Source: Oikopleura dioica (Eukaryota > Animalia > Chordata). From it: a DNA stretch of 64,000 nt. The DNA is taken from the NCBI GenBank assembly GCA_907165135.1, contig OU015568.1:16069208-16133207 (forward strand), in the 5' to 3' direction. The translations under genes and the position numbers were made by a program. The notes beneath the pieces are model-generated. The model saw only the letters and a list, made by a program, of their open reading frames with translations, did no database searches and was not told where the DNA came from. Shown one piece after another: positions 7,723-64,000 of this stretch (positions within the stretch are counted from its first letter, which is position 1; the number at the start of each line of letters is the position of its first letter).

Positions 7723-10700
7723 TAGGGCTTCCGTATAAAAAAATTGTTTCTGATTCCGTTCATTGTTTCCTTAAATAATTATGGGAGGGATAAATCAATA
7801 TAAGAAAAGGTTTTTAGGGGCAAAAGAAATAAAAAAAAATAATGTTTGATATCAAAATTATATAAATAAAAATGGTGATTTTTCATTTGTGCGTTGTCAC
7901 TTGTCGATTTTTTTTATTTTTTGATATGTTATAGAGAAACATCAAAAACATAATATTTCATAAAAAAAATTTTGACTGGCCATTTATATCATCAGAAATA
8001 GTAACTTTTAGTAGAAAAATAACAAAGTTATTGTTAAAAAGTCCTCCGGAGGACTTTTGCTGGAAGAAACTATTTAGAAGAAGACATAGAATTAAATTTT
8101 TCAAAAATATATAATATTTCAATATTTAACGCAAAACCATAATTTGCAAATAAACAAGGACAAATTGAATTTTAATAATCATGGGTGTGGGTGGGGTTGG
8201 GGACATAACTGAGATTGATCAACTCAGAGTTCCAGGCCTTTGTCAAGCCCCTTAAATTTAAAAATCATGGAACGGGGCTGAAACGGCCCGAAGGGCCGTC
8301 AAGCCCCTTAAATTTAAAAATCATGGAACGGGGCTGAAACGGCCCGAAGGGCCGTCAAGCCCCTTAAATTTAAAAATCATGGAACGGGGCTGAAACGGCC
8401 CGAAGGGCCGTCAAGCCCCTTAAATTTAAAAATCATGGAACGGGGCTGAAACGGCCCGAAGGGCCGTCAAGCCCCTTAAATTTAAAAATCATGGAACGGG
8501 GCTGAAACGGCCCGAAGGGCCGTCAAGCCCCTTAAATTTAAAATCATGGAACGGGGCTGAAACGGCCCGAAGGGCCGTCAAGCCCCTTAAATTTAAAAAT
8601 CATGGAACGGGGCTGAAACGGCCCGAAGGGCCGTCAAGCCCCTTAAATTTAAAAATCATGGAACGGGGCTGAAACGGCCCGAAGGGCCGTCAAGCCCCTT
8701 AAATTTAAAAATCATGGAACGGGGCTGAAACGGCCCGAAGGGCCGTCAAGCCCCTTAAATTTAAAAATCATGGAACGGGGCTGAAACGGCCCGAAGGGCC
8801 GTCAAGCCCCTTAAATTTAAAAATCATGGAACGGGGCTGAAACGGCCCGAAGGGCCGTCAAGCCCCTTAAATTTAAAAATCATGGAACGGGGCTGAAACG
8901 GCCCGAAGGGCCGTCAAGCCCCTTAAATTTAAAATCATGGAACGGGGCTGAAACGGCCCGAAGGGCCGTCAAGCCCCTTAAATTTAAAAATCATGGAACG
9001 GGGCTGAAACGGCCCGAAGGGCCGTCAAGCCCCTTAAATTTAAAAATCATGGAACGGGGCTGAAACGGCCCGAAGGGCCGTCAAGCCCTTAAATTTAAAA
9101 ATCATGGAACGGGGCTGAAACGGCCCGAAGGGCCGTCAAGCCCTTAAATTTAAAAATCATGGAACGGGGCTGAAACGGCCCGAAGGGCCGTCAAGCCCCT
9201 TAAATTTAAAAATCATGGAACGGGGCTGAAACGGCCCGAAGGGCCGTCAAGCCCCTTAAATTTAAAAATCATGGAACGGGGCTGAAACGGCCCGAAGGGC
9301 CGTCAAGCCCCTTAAATTTAAAAATCATGGAACGGGGCTGAAACGGCCCGAAGGGCCGTCAAGCCCCTTAAATTTAAAAATCATGGAACGGGGCTGAAAC
9401 GGCCCGAAGGGCCGTCAAGCCCTTAAATTTAAAAATCATGGAACGGGGCTGAAACGGCCCGAAGGGCCGTCAAGCCCCTTAAATTTAAAAATCATGGAAC
9501 GGGGCTGAAACGGCCCGAAGGGCCGTCAAGCCCTTAAATTTAAAAATCATGGAACGGGGCTGAAACGGCCCGAAGGGCCGTCAAGCCCCTTAAATTTAAA
9601 AATCATGGAACGGGGCTGAAACGGCCCGAAGGGCCGTCAAGCCCCTTAAATTTAAAAATCATGGAACGGGGCTGAAACGGCCCGAAGGGCCGTCAAGCCC
9701 CTTAAATTTAAAAATCATGGAACGGGGCTGAAACGGCCCGAAGGGCCGTCAAGCCCCTTAAATTTAAAAATCATGGAACGGGGCTGAAACGGCCCGAAGG
9801 GCCGTCAAGCCCCTTAAATTTAAAAATCATGGAACGGGGCTGAAACGGCCCGAAGGGCCGTCAAGCCCTTAAATTTAAAAATCATGGAACGGGGCTGAAA
9901 CGGCCCGAAGGGCCGTCAAGCCCCTTAAATTTAAAATCATGGAACGGGGCTGAAACGGCCCGAAGGGCCGTCAAGCCCTTAAATTTAAAAATCATGGAAC
10001 GGGGCTGAAACGGCCCGAAGGGCCGTCAAGCCCTTAAATTTAAAAATCATGGAACGGGGCTGAAACGGCCCGAAGGGCCGTCAAGCCCCTTAAATTTAAA
10101 AATCATGGAACGGGGCTGAAACGGCCCGAAGGGCCGTCAAGCCCCTTAAATTTAAAAATCATGGAACGGGGCTGAAACGGCCCGAAGGGCCGTCAAGCCC
10201 CTTAAATTTAAAAATCATGGAACGGGGCTGAAACGGCCCGAAGGGCCGTCAAGCCCCTTAAATTTAAAAATCATGGAACGGGGCTGAAACGGCCCGAAGG
10301 GCCGTCAAGCCCCTTAAATTTAAAAATCATGGAACGGGGCTGAAACGGCCCGAAGGGCCGTCAAGCCCTTAAATTTAAAATCATGGAACGGGGCTGAAAC
10401 GGCCCGAAGGGCCGTCAAGCCCCTTAAATTTAAAAATCATGGAACGGGGCTGAAACGGCCCGAAGGGCCGTCAAGCCCCTTAAATTTAAAAATCATGGAA
10501 CGGGGCTGAAACGGCCCGAAGGGCCGTCAAGCCCCTTAAATTTAAAATCATGGAACGGGGCTGAAACGGCCCGAAGGGCCGTCAAGCCCCTTAAATTTAA
10601 AAATCATGGAACGGGGCTGAAACGGCCCGAAGGGCCGTCAAGCCCCTTAAATTTAAAAATCATGGAACGGGGCTGAAACGGCCCGAAGGGCCGTCAAGCC

Positions 10701-53739: not shown

Positions 53740-53920
53740 GTATTCTCGCAAAAGACTTTTAAAAGAGCTGTTTACTTGTCTGACACGAACATTGCAACTT
53801 ATCTCAATTAATGTAATAGTGATGCCTTCATTGCAATTGGAAAGTACGATGAAGAAAACGGCAATTGCAACTGCAATTTGTGTGCAACGTGCGAGAGGTG
53901 GTGGGACAGTCCGCCCTAAA
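53740..53920 (+). pseudogene. Decayed small Cys-containing gene upstream of kinase copy 1
   Basis: ..TNIATYLN*CNSDAFIAIGKYDEENGNCNCNLCATCERWWDSPP*; homologous to 60470-60620; in-frame stop. Confidence 0.45.
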
Positions 53921-54003
53921 CTGAATAAACACTTTTGTTCGGAAGATTTCATAGCGTTTTTACGGAGGATTTGTTCTGAGACGTAACATATTTCATTAAA
54001 AAA

Positions 54004-57000
54004 ATGCAAGTTTCAACGCATCCAAAAGGATTAACAAGAGAAGCTGTTGCGAAATGGCTGGAAGATTTTAAAAAGAAATTGAAAAGAACGACGAGCAGAG
54101 ATGATTTGGATAGACTGATTTTGTCGGTGGAGAGATACGATTTTAAATTAGATTTTCATGCTAACTGGGAGGCGGTTATTTTTAAAAATGGAAAAGGAAA
54201 AGTTCTTGGTAGACAGACTTGGTTGTCAGAAGAATGGGAAATAACTTCATTTCAAAAAATGATCCTCGACAAAAATCCGCAACTCGAAGGTCGAATAATT
54301 AAACGCTCAGAACTAATAGAGGAAACCGGACAATGGATTATCGACGAATTTCTTCAGCAAAATTTAATTTCAGCCGGAGGAGAAGCGATTGTTCTTGAAG
54401 ACAAATTTGGAGAATTGGAAGGGGCCGTTCGGGTTCAGGTTTTTGATTCGGCGCTTTTTACGGGGAAAACTGAAGAAATGGAATATGAAATTAATCTTTC
54501 GGAAGGTATTTTTTATTTTTTAAAATACAGTCGTTACGCACGGTTAGCGGACATTATAAACAAACGGACATTATAAACAAACGGACATTATAAACAAAAC
54601 GGACATTATAAACATTTTTTAATTTATGAAAATCAGAACGGACATTATAAACAAAACGGACATTATAAACAAACGGACATTATAAACAAAATAAAAAATG
54701 TTTATAATGTCTGTTTGTTTATAATGTCCGTTTTGTTTATAATGTCCGTTGTAACTTTCAGAAATTCAAGAAATGTTTATAATGTCCCTTTTGTTTATAA
54801 TGTCCGTTTCGGAATTCCATTGGAATCGTTACAAAGGATAAACTATACACATTTAAAGTGACCCTCCCTGGAGAAAACTTTTTCGAAATAAGAATCGAAA
54901 AAATTTAACCTATGATAAAATTTTTGATTAAGAAAGTCTACCCCTTCTAACGCAATGATTTTGCTACTTAAAAATGCAAGTCTACTCGAGGATTTGCTGT
55001 CAGATTGGTGATTCGCGCCTGTCAGAAGGTGAATTTATTCACAGATTCCTGTGCCCCTAACCACGGGGCTACGCCCCTTAGGTCCTAAAATGCCGGGGTC
55101 TAGTCTATGGTTACTTAGGGTTACCTTCGGTATCCCTAACTAACCCTAGCCTATCCCCCTCGGGTGAGTTAGTTCTGTCATTTTGCCCAGTGCCCCTAAC
55201 ACTAACCTCAAATTATAGATAGTACATATTGCTAAAATGATAAAATATATACTATCTATAAATTATAGATAGTACATATTGCAACAAATGGGCGAAAATT
55301 TCTAAGCTTTCGAAAGACTCCTTATATGGCTTATTAAGATGACAATAAAAAACCGAAAAAAATCGGATTTTCATGCTAGCTAAGTACAATTAATATGCAT
55401 TTTTGCAATTTTTGAAGGCCAAAATCTCGGGGATAGATGTTCGTAAGGGGGTCATGTGACACATCAAAATGATCCTCAGAAAACTGGGAATCTTAAAATG
55501 TCAAACATAGACCCTTATCAAAGAGTTGAAAAAACAGGCGGTATCCCTTAAGTGTGTATAGTTTATCCTTTGTAACGATTCCAATGAAATTCCGAAATTG
55601 CAAACGGACATTATAAACAAAAGGGACATTATAAACATTTCTTGAATTTCTGAAAGTTACAACGGACATTATAAACAAAACGGACATTATAAACAAACAG
55701 ACATTATAAACATTTTTTATTTTGTTTATAATGTCCGTTTGTTTATAATGTCCGTTTTGTTTATAATGTCCGTTCTGATTTTCATAAATTAAAAAATGTT
55801 TATAATGTCCGTTTTGTTTATAATGTCCGTTTGTTTATAATGTCCGTTTGTTTATAATGTCCGCTAACCGTTACGCACAATTCCGGACACTTTTTTTTTC
55901 AGCAAAAAGGGCCAAATGTCCGGAATTGTGCGGATTCTAGATGGAAAAAATTTTTGTTTTCAAAATGCTTGTTTTTTATTCAAAACGTAAAATATCGAGA
56001 AAAAAGCAGAAGCCAGAAAAGCCGAAGAAACAAGCAAGCATTCTTAGTTTTTTTGCAAGAAAATGATCAAGTAAAATAAATTTCAGTTAATGTTTCTCCT
56101 TGGATTTTATTGTGACATGTTTCGATCTTTGTTAGATCATTTTCAAACTAAAGAACAGCTACAGTAAGTCACAAATAATAGGGAGGGGCTCGAAACAATT
56201 CTGCATGCAGAACTATTCTGCAAAAAAAAGAACTATTCTGCAAAAAATGGAACTATTCTGCGTTTCGCACAACTATTCTGCCGAGTGCAGAACTATTCTC
56301 AAAATGTAGAACTATTCTGCAAAATACAGAACTATTCTGCACGAAAGCAGAACTATTCTTTATATCCAGAACTATTCTGCAATATAAAGAACTATTCTGC
56401 ATTTCGTGAATATAGCACGCGACAGGCCTTCGGCCCTTACGCGCGCATTTTCTGGTAGGAAACTCATTGGGTTGGCAGGGGCAGTCTTTCTCTACCGCTG
56501 GGACTCCAATCTTTCGGAAATTTGAGTCTTTTTGGTGTTTATTTGTGCTTATATCCGTTTTGGCGGATGCAGAACTATTCTCCGGAAAATGCAGAACTAT
56601 TCTGCATGCAGAATTATTTCGATCGAATAAGGGCGAGATTTGATCGAAACAATTCTGCATTTTGCAGAACTATTCTGCATGCAGAATTGTTTCGATCGTT
56701 TCCCAAATAATAGGAGAAAAGAATACCTTTGAGTTGTTATGAATTTTAAATAGGAAAAACGCAATTGAACAGAAAAAGCGAGGTGCAGTTGTTTTTGAGA
56801 TGGAGCAGCTCCTCGCTTTTTCTGTTCAGTTGCGTTTTTCGTAAATTCATAACGACTCAAGGGTATTCTTTTCTCCTACTACTTGTGACTTACTGTAGCT
56901 GTTCTTTAGTTTGAAAATGACTCTAACAAAGATCGAAACATGTCACAATAAAATCCAAAGAGAAACATTCAATCTTGGTCAACTTATACGATATAAATTT

Positions 57001-59252
57001 CAGTTAATATTTTTTGTCGAATTGTCCGGAATTGTGCGTTTTTTAATTTTTTCCGTTTTCCTCTAAATGTCCGGAATTGTGCGTTACGGAATTGTGCGTA
57101 ACGACTGTAGTTTCTCCTTTTAAAGGTCTAAACCAATTATCGGAAAATTTAATTTTGGAGAAATGAATTTTGAAACGATTAATTTAGGAAAAATGAATTT
57201 TTAAACGATTAATTTTTAAAAAATAATCTAGGACCGACTTATATTGGAAATCCAAATCTCTAGGATCCATTTTTGGATGACCAATAAGATTGCCGTATTT
57301 GGCCTACCGGCCAATCAAAACCCTTCTTCATAAAATCATTTCAAAAATTAGTTCTTCCCAAATTACTCGTTTCAAAATAATTTTATCCCCACTAATTGTT
57401 CCTAAATTATTTTATCCTCACTAATCGTTTCTCTACTAACTTCTCCAAAATTAAATTTTCCAAAAATTGGTTTAACCCCTTTTTAAGACTACGATACCGC
57501 GCAGACCGAGGAAAAAGATGACGCTGAAGTCATCCCTGTTCATCAAAACGTGATCAAAAACTTCTGCAACATCGAAATTTACGCGGTGAAAGACGAAAAA
57601 AGAGAGGACTGCCTCGGATGGATTACGATTATGGAGAAATGCGACTCAGATTTGAGAAGCAGACTGAAAAAGGACGATTTGAGCTTGGAGCAAAGGAAGA
57701 GAATTGCGATGAAAGTGGAAGAAGGAAGAGATTATTTAAAGAGCATTGGAATTTGGCATCAAGATCAGAAGCCGGAAAATATTTTGTTGAAAAATGAAGA
57801 ATGCAAATGGATCGATTTTGGGACAATTGAAGAAGAGACTGGAAGGGAGAGCTACCGAAGGATGGGCTACGCGAGGAAAGGGAGCAAATATCGTGGTAAT
57901 AGCTACTTGTGTAAGTTTTGAATTGAAAATATTTGGAAATAATTTGCTCGCGTTTTTTTTCTCAGATGCTGGATCAGCTGCCTTTTCGGAAAGTTATCAA
58001 CTTTGTGGAAGATTAGGAGGAGATAGATCACAACTTCACGTTTTTATTCTTTGTGATTGGAAAACAGCGTGGAGTCTTCTTTTCAAGCCAATCGAAGAAA
58101 AAGAAAGAAAGAAAATCAAAAAAGAACTAAAGGTAAGAGCTTGTTTCTGCAATTGAATAAATATTTCAAGGCGTACAATGCTGAGTGGCTCTCAAGAGAA
58201 ACTCCATCAACCGAAGAAATCGAAAACTTTTCAAAAATAATTTCTCTTAAAAACCCTTCTTGTGATTTTTGCGTTGACGATCCAAATTTGACAAAATCCT
58301 CAGCAATGGGTAATCTTAAACAAAAGCTGACACGACAGATCAATTTCGACTTCGAGAATGTGACGAAGAATGTTTTAAACCAAAAAGAAAGCAATCTTTG
58401 TGTTCCCATTTCAGTTTCTGTTCTTTTGAGATGGGCAATCAAAAATGATTTGAAATTTGATGATTGGATGATGGAAAATGATTTTACTCTCGAAAAAATC
58501 TTCACAACTCTGACAATGGTAATTTATCCGCGCAGTTTGGCTGGATTTAATCTCAATCCGAAAAAAGAAGAACAAGAATTTCAAGCGAACGAAATCGAAT
58601 TGCTTCTCAGAAGAATGAAATTTGATACTTATCTGAATGAAAGTGGATGGGACAAATTATAATATATCTATTTAGAAGCGAAATTTGATTATGAAAAAGG
58701 TTTTTCAGGAGCAAAACTAAATATTCATTACAATTCTAGTTATCCTGCATCGCAACTTCACCTTTTCCCGCGCTATGACCGTCATCGGCTGTTACCTAAA
58801 TCCCGACGACTCAATAATTTTCCATCAAATGGTGCTGGACCGAATCGAGAACTCCGAATTCATTCTCCAAAACTCTCTCATCGATCATTTCGGCTCTCAA
58901 ATCAGAATCCCTCTTTCTCGCGACTTCTACGCTTCTGAAGAAATGATGAAGGACTGCTTCAACTGCTACAACGATTTTGTTTATTACGGAGAGAACAACG
59001 AGTTTCTTGCTTTGGTCAACGAAAATTTCAACATGGAAAAAGAAAAATGGTACCTCCTACCTCAAGCTTATTCAATAACTCTTACTCCACCTCAAGAATA
59101 CTCACTAAGCTCTCAAAGCTCGGATTCACAAAGCCAGGTAAAATTTAATCCAGCTTTAATATTCTAATTTTAATCTCTAGGCGTCAATTTTTCGAAAAGT
59201 AAAAAAGAAACTTCAATCAGCAGGACGCCGCCTCAAGAAGTTTTTTCATTAA
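54004..59252 (+). CDS. Protein kinase fused to papain-like cysteine protease domain (copy 1)
   Basis: Kinase: LISAGGEAIVL, AVRVQ, HQDQKPENILL, WIDFG. Protease-like: NFDFENVTKNVLNQKESNLCVPIS, FHQMVLDRIENSEFILQNS. Intron 1 (54506-57487) swollen by MITEs. In-frame TAA at 58660-58662 is either a premature stop or lies in a 33-nt GT-AG intron (58643-58675). Confidence 0.8.
54542..55869. mobile_element. GG-ended foldback element with 9-bp TSD (Merlin- or Mutator-like), nested in the Tc1-like TIR
   Basis: Termini ggttagcggacattataaac / gtttataatgtccgctaacc; TSD gttacgcac at 54533-54541 and 55870-55878; arms made of ggacattataaac repeats. Confidence 0.9.
56090..56995. mobile_element. Foldback element with cagaactattctg repeats, nested in the Tc1-like MITE
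   Basis: About 85-bp inverted arms (56090-56175 vs 56884-56970); many internal cagaactattct repeats; 16-bp direct repeat ataaatttcagttaat flanking. Confidence 0.75.
57120..57482. mobile_element. AT-rich MITE at the 3' end of kinase copy 1 intron 1
   Basis: Absent from the homologous intron of copy 2; imperfect termini aggtctaaacc / ggtttaacccct and inverted aaaattaattttggagaa motifs. TSD unclear. Confidence 0.6.
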
Positions 59253-59488
59253 AAGATATTATTGATTAATAAAACACTTATAAAGAAAAAGAATTTTTAT
59301 CCGGCTTTATTATAGAGTAATTGTCAAACGTCATAATTACTTTTTAATTTTGCGTTATATTTTCTCTATTCTGTGGTTCGTTTTTCGCAAAAATAAATAT
59401 TCTTTCAAACGAATTTTTTTAATCATAAATAATATTTATTAAAGATCCGGGAAAGGTAAAAATGCAGCAAAAAGGAATGAACAAAGTA

Positions 59489-60674: not shown

Positions 60675-62599
60675 ATGCAAGTTTCCTCGCATCCAAAAGA
60701 ATTGACTAGAGAAGCTGTTGAGAAATGGCTGCAAGATTTTAAAAAGAAATTGAAGAGAACGACGAGTAGAGATGATTTGGACAGATTGATTTTGTCGGTG
60801 GAGAGATACGAGTTTGAAGATATACATTGTGCTGGGTGGGAAGAGGTTATTTTTCAAAATGGAAAAGGAAGAGTTTTTGGAAAGAATTGGAAGGGAAATT
60901 TTTCAGAACAATGGGCAATGACTTCATTTCAAAAAATGATCCTCGGCGAAAATCCACAATTAGAAGGACGAAGGATCAAGCGCTTAGAACTCAAAGAAGA
61001 AACTGGAGAATGGATTATCGACGAATTTCATCAGCAAAAATTAATTTCAGCCGGAGGAGAAGCAATTGTTTTGGAAGAAAAATTTGGAGGATTGGAAATT
61101 GCGGTTCGAGTTCAAGCTTTTGATTCGGCGCTTTTTGTTGGGAAGACTGAAGAAATGGAATATGAAATTAATCTTTCGGAAGGTATTTTTATTTTTTTAA
61201 AATAGTTTCTCCTTTTTAAGACTACGATACCGCTCATAACGACGAAGAAGACGACGCTGAAGTTATCCCTGTTCATCCAAACGTGATCAAAAACTTCTGC
61301 AACATCGAAATTTACGCGAGCAAAGACGAAAAAAGACAAAACTGCCTCGGATGGATTACGATTATGGAGAAATGCGACTCAGATTTAAGAAGCAGATTGA
61401 AATTGGAAGATTTGAGCTTGGAAAAAAGGAAGAAAATTGCGATTGGAGTGAGAGAGGGATACAAGTATTTGTGGAACATTGGAATTTGGCATTACGATCA
61501 GAAGCGGCAGTTATCTAATTTTGGAAAAACTGAGGATGGATCGTAACAAAAAGGTTTGGTTAAGGAGGGATCATAACACTAAGGATTTTCCAAGGAAGGA
61601 ACGTAACAAAAATTATTTACTAACGATGGAAAGAATTATTTGGAAACTTCGATTTTTCAAGTGCAATTTTAAGGGTGTTAGAGGCCTAACGGCCGAATTA
61701 AAACCCGCCAAAATGAAAGAGGGGGCCGAGAGCTTCATTTTAATGTGGGTTTCTTTAGGCCGGTAGGCCTCTAACACCCTTAAAATTGCACTTGAAAAAT
61801 CGAAGTTTCCAAATAATTCTTTCCATCGTTAGTAAATAATTTTTGTTACGTTCCTTCCTTGGAAAATCCTTAGTGTTATGATCCCTCCTTAACCAAACCT
61901 TTTTGTTACGATCCATCCTTAGTTTTTCCTATTTTAGATAAACGCCTCAGAAGCCGGAAAATATTTTATTGAAAAATGGCGAATGCAAATGGATCGATTT
62001 TGGGATAATTGAGGAAAGTACTGGAAGGGAGAGCTATCGACGAATGGGCTACGCGAGGGAAGGGAGCAAATATAGATATTGTAAATATTTATGTAAGTTT
62101 TGAATTGAAATTATTTGAAAATAATTTGCTCGTGTTTAATTTTTTCTCAGATGCTGGATCTGCTGCCTTTTCGGTAAGTTATCAACTTTGTAAAAGATTG
62201 GGAGTAGGAAGAATAGACGAGTATTCACCACTTCACGTTTTGATTCTATGTGATTGGAAAACTGCCTGGAGTCTTCTTTTCAAACCGATCGAAAGAGACG
62301 GAAGAGAGAAAATTGAAGAAGAACTTAAGGTAAGAGCTTGTTTCTGCAATTGAAGAAATATCAAGGCGTGCAATGCTGAGTGGCTCTCGAGAGGAAATCC
62401 ATTAACCGAAGAAATCGTAAACGTGTCAAAAATAATTTCTCTAAAGAACACGGCTCCGGATTTTTGCCTGGACGATCCAAATTTAACGAAATCGACGGCA
62501 ATGGCGAGTCTCAAGCAAAAACTGACGAGACAGATCAACTTCGACTTCAAAAATGTGACGAAAAGTGTTTTAAACCAAAAAGAAAGTAATCTTTGTGTT
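60675..62599 (+). pseudogene. Kinase-protease fusion copy 2, disrupted
   Basis: Colinear and highly similar to copy 1 (MQVSSHPKELTREAVEKWL...); MITE in the catalytic-loop exon; LTR element right after QKESNLC. Confidence 0.88.
61506..61946. mobile_element. GGC-ended foldback MITE with 8-bp TSD (Merlin-like) in the kinase catalytic loop
   Basis: Termini ggcagttatctaa / ttagataaacgcc; TSD tcagaagc at 61498-61505 and 61947-61954; about 150-bp near-perfect inverted arms. Confidence 0.9.
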
Positions 62600-62915
62600 A
62601 GAGATGTGCTGAATAAGGGTTTCACCAGCGCATAGGCGCACCCGAGCAAATGTCGTAAACTACATGTCCGCGAGTCCTCGGCACAACTCGACACTCTGAT
62701 TCTGACACTCTGACTTTTGACACTCTGATACAAAGACAACCAAAAGATACTCCTTCTGAAACACTCCACCTTTTGATACACTCTGCTCTCTCCAGAGATC
62801 AATACAATCAACTGTAAACTTAACCGTGTTTGACCATCATGAGGCATGAGCAACTACAGTAGCATAAGGCAACGCCGCCCGGCCAAATATCCAGCACATC
62901 CGTTCAACTTCTATC
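62596..62915 (+). mobile_element. 5' LTR of a Ty3/gypsy-type (Tor-like) retrotransposon; boundaries approximate
   Basis: Homology with copy 1 stops at ctttgtgtt; new sequence starts tgttagag; internal gacactctga repeats; followed directly by a PBS-like motif and a long ORF. Confidence 0.7.
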
Positions 62916-62928
62916 TGGTGACTTCGAG
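62916..62928 (+). promoter_or_regulatory. Putative primer-binding site (tRNA-Trp-like)
   Basis: TGGTGACTTCGAG resembles the Trp PBS TGGTGACCCCGAC, with mismatches. Confidence 0.55.
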
Positions 62929-62937
62929 AAAACAACA

Positions 62938-64000
62938 ATGGTGCCCACAAGTAAGTCAGTAAGGTATGAGATACAAAGACTGAAAATCTATGGAATTCCG
63001 GATGCTCTTATTTCTCAAATAAAAGCTCATTACAAAATCGAATCAAAAAGAAATTTTCAAAGTGGACTCTTTGAATATTTCTTTAACATTCATGGAGAAG
63101 AAATCAGACCGCACTTATTAGCATGTCCTTTTTATCTGAAAGATAAAAATAAAAACGAACCCTACGCGAATCTTTACCTGGCTCTTGCCTTTCCCGACAA
63201 AAATCAAGTAACGGATGACCAATTTATGAAATTATATTCCTATGACGAACTATGGGAAAAAGTTCCGGAGAATATTGACAATATCCCAATATTTGATCCG
63301 AGAAATATTGGAACTGTCGAGAAAAACATCGAAAATTCTTTAGTTTTTCTGTATAAAAGACATATCATTGATAGGAAAACAATTTCAAATTTCAAATTTG
63401 GGCAATCTGATGAAATTTTTGATCCAGCTCAGACAGAAATTAAAACAGAATATTTTGGGGACAAAAGCTCAATAATTTCAATGATTCAATTGACTGATAA
63501 AAACCAATCCAATGCTTCAAAATTTAAGAGAACGAGGGATATTGAAAGTGAAAAATTAGCCAAAATCACAAGGTCTAAAATAAACTCGAACCCCGCGAAA
63601 ATTTCGTATGACATAAATTTTCTTAGTTCTTCTGAAGATGAATCAGATTCTGGGTCATCAGTCATTCAGATGGGAACCGATGGTCCTGGTTCTCGGGGAA
63701 AATATTTTTCAGAAAGAGATGCGTTAGTGAACAACATTGAGCATTCAGAAGAAATGAAAATGAGTCAAATAAAGAAATTTTCGGCTAACGACGATACTGA
63801 TGGCCTGCTCTTGTGGGCGGAAAATCAGATTTTTAATCTAAAATTGCAAAACTGCAATAAGACATTATCTGATAGTGTGATTATAGGCTCTCTTATCTCA
63901 AAAATTGAAAATAGATCAGTAGCAGATGGAATTTCATCGAAATTACAGGATTTACAGAAACGAGGGATGCAAATTACGATAAAGAGATTTACCGCTTTAA
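62938..64000 (+). CDS. Gag-like ORF of LTR retrotransposon, runs off the window
   Basis: Intronless frame open from ATG 62938 (MVPTSKSVRYEIQRLKIYG...) to the window end, 22 nt after the start of the PBS; KKFSANDDTDGLLLWAENQ resembles a capsid motif. Missing from the ORF track because no stop is reached. Confidence 0.75.
   Translation, partial: MVPTSKSVRYEIQRLKIYGIPDALISQIKAHYKIESKRNFQSGLFEYFFNIHGEEIRPHLLACPFYLKDKNKNEPYANLYLALAFPDKNQVTDDQFMKLYSYDELWEKVPENIDNIPIFDPRNIGTVEKNIENSLVFLYKRHIIDRKTISNFKFGQSDEIFDPAQTEIKTEYFGDKSSIISMIQLTDKNQSNASKFKRTRDIESEKLAKITRSKINSNPAKISYDINFLSSSEDESDSGSSVIQMGTDGPGSRGKYFSERDALVNNIEHSEEMKMSQIKKFSANDDTDGLLLWAENQIFNLKLQNCNKTLSDSVIIGSLISKIENRSVADGISSKLQDLQKRGMQITIKRFTAL

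Follow-up and report, generated by a model that had tools for sequence, protein, structure and literature searches.

Disrupted copies of an Oikopleura-restricted gene family that joins an atypical kinase-like domain to a papain-fold peptidase-like domain

Gene models of the two copies

The window analyzed here is a 64,000-nt stretch of the Oikopleura dioica genome (assembly GCA_907165135.1, contig OU015568.1, positions 16,069,208 to 16,133,207), and all coordinates are given within it. Its forward strand carries two tandem copies of one gene, copy A (54004-59252) and copy B (60675-62599). The gene encodes a kinase-like domain, a helical linker and a C-terminal papain-like domain (C-domain). 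A single reading frame joins the kinase fold to the papain fold, the catalytic residues of both are conserved except for the lysine of the kinase VAIK motif, and the sequence has been under purifying selection.

The exon joins of copy A were derived from the reading frames and then compared with relatives. The annotated O. dioica gene L002 (FN653067.1), which encodes protein P0097, has its introns at the same places as the copy A model. Exon 1 (54004-54505) encodes the N-terminal region and the start of the kinase N-lobe, with a SAGGEA glycine loop and AVRV, and the region is matched by paralogues in tblastn searches. Its phase 1 donor (G/GTATTT at 54505/54506) joins in frame to 57488 across intron 1 (54506-57487, 2982 nt), which is swollen by transposon insertions. 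The tblastn match of P0097 is likewise broken briefly after residue 180, at the exon 1/intron 1 position. Exon 2 (57488-57910) contains the kinase core, including the hinge, the HQDQKPEN catalytic loop, DFG and the activation segment. Splicing at its donor (TGT/GTAAGT at 57910) gives ...GNSYL-Y-AGSAAF, which equals the family's ...DSSAL-F-AGSPGF in length, and the intron position matches L002. Exon 3 (57966-58132) encodes the kinase C-lobe, which contains the alpha-F motif CDWKTAWSLLF, followed by the first part of the helical linker, and aligns to the family consensus FLFCDWKTSWSLLY. Exon 4 (58171-58699) encodes the linker (DDPNLTKS) and the N-terminal half of the papain-like domain, with Gln at 58381, Cys at 58399, YPRSLAG, SGW and an in-frame TAA. 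Exon 5 (58740-59137) supplies the C-terminal half of this domain (His at 58823, Asn at 58871 and WYLLPQAYS) and a Ser-rich tail. The conceptual product has 696 codons, with one in-frame stop at codon 528.

An earlier reading of the same DNA, made from the sequence alone, had placed Gln six residues before Cys and His 16 residues before Asn. The codons are exactly as claimed: CAA for Gln (58381-58383), TGT for Cys (58399-58401), CAT for His (58823-58825) and AAC for Asn (58871-58873), and the two peptides quoted there are both present.

Copy B was delimited by tblastn and alignment. It has the same N-terminus, kinase and linker, continues up to the Cys codon, and is disrupted. A palindromic miniature inverted-repeat transposable element (MITE, 61506-61946) of 441 nt, with 200-nt arms that are 95% complementary and an 8-bp target duplication TCAGAAGC, splits the catalytic-loop codons DQK/PEN. 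The homology of copy B to the family stops abruptly at 62599/62600, right after Cys-Val. For copies A and B, 382 codons give a ratio of nonsynonymous to synonymous substitution rates (Ka/Ks) of 0.32; the 78 codons of exon 4 that both copies have, from the linker up to the catalytic Cys, give 0.16. These low ratios indicate that both copies were under purifying selection for most of their separate history.

Beyond copy B, positions 62600-64000 hold unrelated sequence, in which a frame of at least 378 codons stays open from about 62866 to the window's end. It has no Pfam match and may belong to a larger inserted element or to another gene.

State of copy A

Exons 4 and 5 are separated by intron 4 (58700-58739), a 40-nt phase 1 intron with GT..AG ends. 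Its position and phase are those of a 39-nt intron in the annotated P0097 gene, which reads ...DYKK-G/GTAAAA...TTTCAG/TC against ...DYEK-G/GTTTTT...TCTAG/TT in the window. Removing it restores ...FDYEK-V-ILHRNF, matching the family's ...CEFKK-V-ILNQNF. The premature stop (TAA, 58660-58662, conceptual codon 528) lies upstream of this intron and separates the two halves of the protease domain, the one with Cys and the one with His. The exon of L002 is continuous through the stop region, reading ...ESGWEIVRTQSWSYPAESTCDYKK. In the closest relative found, the metagenome contig k141_725605 (L001, 83% DNA identity), no stop interrupts the frame at this place either, and the codon opposite the TAA is AAA. 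Because the exon is uninterrupted in both relatives, the TAA is placed in coding sequence; judged by these alignments, it is inside exon 4 and not in an intron.

The sequence-only reading had spliced around the stop, which would make copy A an intact and working gene. In that case a donor at 58642/58643 (A/GTGGAT) would be joined to the acceptor at 58739/58740, the TAA would be removed and a last exon would add a basic helix. The donors at 58642 and 58699 are both phase 1, so the bypass keeps the frame. All other exons of copy A are open with their catalytic residues intact, and the Ka/Ks of 0.32 speaks for selection until recently. However, the bypass would cost 19 codons, among them the Gly-Trp of the SGW motif that at least 90% of family members retain, and both P0097 and L001 read through the segment and use a donor of the 58699 type. 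The GTGGAT donor also looks weak in our judgement, none of the four RNA runs supports any join, and the basic tail has no counterpart in paralogues. We regard a working copy A of this kind as very improbable.

The basic helix itself, ASIFRKVKKKLQSAGRRLKKFFH (59181-59249), was assigned to a putative exon 6 (59181-59252). It can be read in frame through a 43-nt intron (CAG/GTAAAA at 59137/8 and TCTCTAG/G at 59180/1); without further splicing, the open reading frame of exon 5 extends to a TAA at 59165-59167. The basic amphipathic C-terminus described earlier is therefore present in the DNA, but it was found in none of the 202 collected sequences, which are nearly all family members, and the membership of exon 6 in the gene is unsupported. 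Most paralogues end 6-10 residues from WYLLPQAYS, and some have Ser/Asp-rich tails like that of copy A SLSSQSSDSQSQ.

Intron 1 is 2982 nt long in copy A, versus 38 nt in copy B (61183-61220) and about 37 nt in the reference paralogue. The excess, about 3 kb, is transposon sequence. A transposon-like element at 54540-55871 has 270-nt terminal inverted repeats that are 100% complementary and are built from 17-18-nt GGACATTATAAACAAA(A)C units. The perfect match of these repeats suggests a very recent insertion. A second inverted-repeat element (56089-56969) has outer arms of about 95 nt, 96% complementary, and internal 20-nt tandem repeats of the AACTATTCTGC type. Neither the elements with terminal inverted repeats nor the MITE of copy B has more copies elsewhere within the window.

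No RNA reads over copy A were found in four runs mapped to 53900-59350, of which two were uninformative and the others cover few tissues. A few oligo-dT RNA-seq reads (runs X4 and X5) match the 26 nt at 58390-58415 and then continue as CACGACGCTGCTTCGATTTGCGATGAAAAA (..TTLLRFAMK.., the family consensus). Since these reads run into paralogue sequence, at least one other paralogue is transcribed. An apparent RNA joint from 58298 to 58390 was rejected as an artefact of partial paralogue read matches.

Because the TAA lies in an exon, intron 1 holds 3 kb of young transposons and no transcripts were detected, the most likely state of copy A is that of a recent pseudogene or null allele rather than of a gene for a working protease. 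The stop might instead be a sequencing or assembly error or a rare allele, with the gene functional in most individuals. The TAA is one base from the sense codon AAA of L001, and the remaining reading frame of copy A is clean. Against this, the stop is accompanied by signs of disuse, namely the 3 kb of transposons in intron 1, including the 270-nt perfect repeats, and the absence of RNA coverage. Broken copies are also common: L001 has a TAA of its own, copy B carries two disruptions, and the reference gene stands between partial copies. An error or a rare allele is thus quite unlikely. With copy A taken as a pseudogene or null allele, the locus should be labelled as a disrupted copy in genome annotation.

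The gene family and its papain-fold domain

A phmmer search with exon 4 returned 57 cluster representatives, 43 of them below E 1e-10, and 56 of the 57 are family members. The remaining one, P0035, is a 1442-residue bacterial repeat protein and was discarded as a spurious, repeat-driven match. Word-indexed searches with P0003, P0008 and the family alignment gave 40, 44 and 338 proteins, respectively. Among the best 120 of the 338 profile matches, every protein with a named source is from O. dioica and the rest are unnamed metagenome fragments. The family comprises at least 44 long O. dioica proteins together with short marine metagenome contigs, and a gene model of the Okinawa lineage is among its proteins. 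The database names are "unnamed protein product", "Protein kinase domain-containing protein" or "Uncharacterized protein". Long members have 560-795 residues and a constant order of parts: N-terminal region, kinase, linker and C-domain. Full-text literature searches for Oikopleura with cysteine protease and kinase domain, or with peptidase C39, found no paper. The kinase-papain fusion family thus appears undescribed, in line with the initial impression of an unrecognized domain architecture.

Decay is frequent in this family. In FN653067.1, partial family copies flank the intact P0097 gene at 1715-2424 and 9456-10682, with C-terminal pieces upstream and N-terminal pieces downstream, so the reference genome, too, typically has such tandem arrays with fragments. 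L001 carries a premature TAA at a site that is GAA in the window (..QEN-stop-IELL.., about column 1137 of alignment A3) and a deletion of about 30 nt in exon 3; it is a copy that decays independently. The TAA of L001 and the partial copies around the reference gene show that copy decay is common in the family. A large, lineage-restricted tandem family with many dead copies among young transposons fits the fast-evolving gene families of defence, conflict or reproduction.

To describe the C-domain, residues 160-451 of the paralogue P0061 were modelled with AlphaFold from a 41-sequence family alignment (A1). The mean predicted local distance difference test score (pLDDT) is 75.6. Most blocks within residues 61-292 average 83-96, and four fall to 51-79. 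When the model was compared with 48,161 solved chains by VIA-align, all of the best 50 matches were papain-like (clan CA), with about 155-170 aligned residues for the C1A matches. The scores include xylellain (3ois, Z 9.5), Der p 1 (1xkg, Z 9.4), cathepsin B (1qdq, Z 8.8 and 8.5), procaricain (caricain, 1pci, Z 8.5), the PCAT1 peptidase domain (8vp3/7s5j, Z 8.5), ComA (5xe8, Z 7.9), IdeS (Z 7.6), staphopain (Z 7.2), ATG4A and UfSP (both Z 7.1), ZUFSP (Z 5.9-6.6) and AvrRpt2 (Z 5.3). Since the stated background of VIA-align is that a best Z of 7-8 is common for unmatched models, the weight of the papain assignment lies in the uniformity of the match list and not in the top score.

Other comparisons gave a similar picture. 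In AlphaFold DB clusters, the non-family matches at probability 0.94-1.00 are named Peptidase C39-like or C1A, and the family member E4XPZ6 itself is automatically named Peptidase C39-like. The structural neighbours of the C-domain in the ESM Atlas are C39 and C39-like clusters, and language-model features of copy A exon 4 point weakly to Peptidase_C1 and IdeS clusters. Within the full-length P0097 model, the C-domain matches Der f 1 (Z 9.3) and PCAT1 (Z 9.1). When the C-domain model was compared by Foldseek with PDB structures and with Swiss-Prot models, the matches were mostly noise (Kir channels, HTT proteins), likely caused by 60 disordered N-terminal residues.

Sequence profiles of known families did not recognize the domain. 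There was no Pfam match to the C-domain in the copy A exons, in the 41 A1 sequences at E <= 1 or in the long members. In particular, PF00112 gave no match at E <= 1 in the window exons or the 41 A1 sequences, and PF03412 and PF13529 gave none at E <= 1 in the 41 A1 sequences. NCBIfam and PHROGs profiles did not match the C-domain either, and a PDB profile search with it found no peptidase, with one chance match to EsaI (E 0.66). The models thus show the C-domain to have a papain fold (clan CA), a similarity at the level of the fold without a sequence-family match.

The catalytic residues are well conserved. In a motif census of the collected proteins, Cys is kept in 74 of 75 (Ser in P0008) and Gln in 74 of 75 (Glu in P0089), while His is kept in 44 of 45 (Gln in P0086) and Asn in 42 of 45. 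In the P0061 model, Cys63 is the first residue of helix 63-78 and Gln57 stands six residues before it. The VIA-align ranges start at residues 57-59 of this model, adjoining Gln57 and Cys63; these are ranges and not residue superpositions. In the P0097 model, His580 lies inside strand 577-588 and Asn596 directly follows strand 591-595. The spacing from His to Asn is 16-22 residues across the family, because the hairpin loop between them differs in length, as expected if the two residues are on adjacent strands. In these models, the placement of Cys, His and Asn is the papain arrangement. Gln, which would form the oxyanion hole, precedes the nucleophile Cys by six residues, and the strands that carry His and Asn are neighbours. 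The motifs are conserved across paralogues and sit on the right structural elements of a confidently modelled fold, so they do not arise by chance. The papain fold proposed in the sequence-only reading was borne out, and the four residues are conserved. The most conserved motifs of the family are YPRSLAGLNLNP, SGW, FHQMxLDRIEN and WYLLPQAYS, and none of the profile libraries searched recognizes a counterpart of them.

The lack of a signal peptide and prodomain, also claimed earlier, holds for copy A and needs a limit for the family. No secretory signal or I29-type propeptide was found. The copy A start, MQVSTHPKG, does not resemble a signal peptide, no prodomain is recognized by profiles, and the C-domain stands at about residues 440-690, behind the kinase and a linker that has no Pfam domain. 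One O. dioica subfamily (P0105, P0106, P0108 and P0062), however, has a hydrophobic N-terminus of about 20 residues, MLEFSILAILATCIAGMIQ, which is absent from the window copies. Judged by its composition, this segment could be a membrane anchor.

On the models and the conserved residues, the C-domain would probably be an active thiol hydrolase inside the cell, either a peptidase or an isopeptidase, and an endopeptidase appears more likely than a modifier isopeptidase. The fold may also serve another purpose, as a ubiquitin-like isopeptidase, an acyltransferase or amidotransferase, a deamidase or a silent binding module. The structural neighbours at Z 6.6-7.8 include UfSP, ATG4, the phytochelatin-synthase-like Alr0975, a CdiA toxin domain, the PeiR isopeptidase and a lyase, with ZUFSP at 5.9-6.6. 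The protein is apparently cytosolic, cytosolic papain-fold enzymes are often modifier hydrolases, and single catalytic residues are missing from a few paralogues, with Ser for Cys in P0008 and Gln for His in P0086. However, the neighbours with the highest scores belong to the true endopeptidases of families C1 and C39, and Gln-x5-Cys with His-x(16-22)-Asn-Ser/Thr is the C1/C39 peptidase pattern. Conservation of all four catalytic residues counts against a silent module, and seven long members have no UBA or other ubiquitin-related domain. A papain fold without protease function is therefore rather unlikely.

The kinase-like domain and comparison with known systems

The kinase domain seen upstream in the sequence-only reading was confirmed. 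The exon 2 segment 57550-57918 matches Pfam Pkinase (PF00069) with 42.2 bits, above the curated cut-off of 31.7 (E 8e-11), and paralogues match at 31.5-49.4 bits. The full-length AlphaFold model of P0097 (pLDDT 76, predicted template modelling score 0.79) matches many protein kinases with Foldseek probability 1.00. Its VIA-align kinase matches reach Z 11.4 and include PINK1, ULK4 (second, 11.3), BRAF, TTK, Mnk2 and RNase L (10.2). By sequence, just the catalytic-loop region aligns to solved kinases (TTK and CDK9, E about 1e-3).

Most catalytic positions of the kinase are retained. D273, K275, N278, D290 and G292 (HxDxKxxN and D-F/Y-G) are invariant in 27-28 aligned sequences, and the family column census also shows a conserved CDW..W alpha-F motif. 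SxGGEA is invariant in place of GxGxxG, and the VAIK lysine is Arg in 27 of 27 aligned sequences (R154; AVRV or AVRI). The ATP-anchoring pair of Lys and alpha-C Glu is not found, and the P0097 model has no helix between beta-3 (149-157) and beta-4 (205-213). Many kinase alignments of this model begin at residues 5-28, not at about 126. These alignment ranges, which are not coordinates, suggest that the N-terminal helix 15-35 occupies the alpha-C place in the model, so that the long helix of the N-terminal segment would pack where the kinase alpha-C normally lies. Lys-to-Arg at the VAIK site is a classic kinase-dead substitution. Since it is invariant here, a pseudokinase-type regulatory role is at least as likely as phosphotransfer.

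In the architecture of the intact members, a very divergent eukaryotic protein kinase-like domain is followed by the helical linker with LDDPNLTKS and then by the papain-fold cysteine peptidase-like domain. The kinase-like module may mainly regulate or target the protease by binding nucleotide or partners, as in IRE1 and RNase L. By this analogy, we lean slightly towards a regulator or targeting unit over a true phosphotransferase. The LDDPNLTKS segment is conserved, poorly modelled and about 35-45 residues ahead of Cys; that it is a self-cleavage or pseudosubstrate site is speculation. A kinase-gated or self-processing protease, as the sequence-only reading put it, is a hypothetical mechanism. 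A further-reaching proposal is that the intact members are larvacean-specific cytosolic sensor-executioner enzymes, in which a kinase-fold switch, perhaps a nucleotide-binding pseudokinase, acts on the fused protease, with some members apparently anchored by a hydrophobic N-terminus and with expansion and rapid turnover of an immune or conflict type. We consider this unlikely as a whole.

Taken together, the best explanation, with a probability of about 0.8, is that copies A and B are disrupted members of an Oikopleura-restricted multigene family whose intact product has about 700 residues and fuses an atypical kinase to a papain-fold peptidase-like domain, and that copy A is most likely a pseudogene or null allele. 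The initial interpretation holds for the family and fails for the state of copy A. Several points weigh against this explanation. Concerning copy A, only two of the four RNA runs were informative, and these cover few tissues; the TAA may reflect an allele or a mistake in the assembly, and an in-frame splice around it is formally possible. Concerning the C-domain, no peptidase-family sequence profile matches it, the modelled Z of 8-9.5 is just modestly above the VIA-align background of 7-8, and acyltransferases, deamidases, lyases and inactive scaffolds can have the papain fold as well. Concerning the kinase, the regulatory role is argued by analogy, and a kinase with this Lys-to-Arg change that keeps the other catalytic residues could still be a phosphotransferase with an unusual mechanism.

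Dozens of family copies occur in an animal genome that ranks among the most compact, and their catalytic residues are under selection, which argues for a real lineage-specific function, possibly in signalling, defence or reproduction. Its members form a natural series of predicted active, Cys-less, His-less and truncated variants. The family is now labelled merely as protein kinase domain-containing protein and deserves a profile of its own.

The C-domain resembles the papain C1A peptidases (xylellain, Der p 1, cathepsin B and caricain) in having Gln six residues before a Cys at the start of a helix, and His and Asn-Ser on successive strands. However, the identity in structural alignments is 5-14%, and there is no detectable sequence similarity. 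Unlike the C1A enzymes, the C-domain has no signal peptide or recognizable I29 prodomain, is fused behind a kinase and is presumably cytosolic, and it has its own invariant motifs (YPRSLAGLNLNP, SGW and WYLLPQAYS). With the C39 and C39-like peptidases (PCAT1, ComA and LahT, 6mpz) it has a compact papain-like core in common, at Z 7.9-8.5 and a root-mean-square deviation of about 3.0-3.5. In contrast to these, the C-domain is eukaryotic, has about twice their size and no ABC transporter attached to it, and has Asn as the third catalytic residue, where C39 peptidases usually have Asp.

Among kinase-fold proteins, IRE1 and RNase L are built on the same logic as the family, a single chain in which the kinase-fold module immediately precedes an effector enzyme. 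Foldseek aligns the P0097 model to IRE1 over long stretches, and RNase L, a nucleotide-binding pseudokinase, is among the top kinase-fold matches of the model (Z 10.2). The effector in IRE1 and RNase L is the KEN ribonuclease. In contrast, the effector of the family would be a papain-fold thiol enzyme and not a KEN nuclease, and there is no ankyrin or lumenal sensor domain. If the sensor-executioner proposal were true, the family would be a protease-output counterpart of the IRE1/RNase L design, undescribed in animals. The pseudokinases KSR1/2 and those of the ULK4 type offer a second comparison. In mammalian KSR the VAIK lysine is naturally Arg with the other motifs kept, and the family resembles KSR in this Lys-to-Arg change; ULK4 is the second-best structural match. 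However, the sequences are unrelated beyond the kinase fold, and the family has no helix between beta-3 and beta-4 and seems to use one from its N-terminus in its place. Each of the two folds is well known, but a kinase and a papain-fold thiol enzyme in one chain would be a new combination, with a papain-like domain that is an orphan in sequence.

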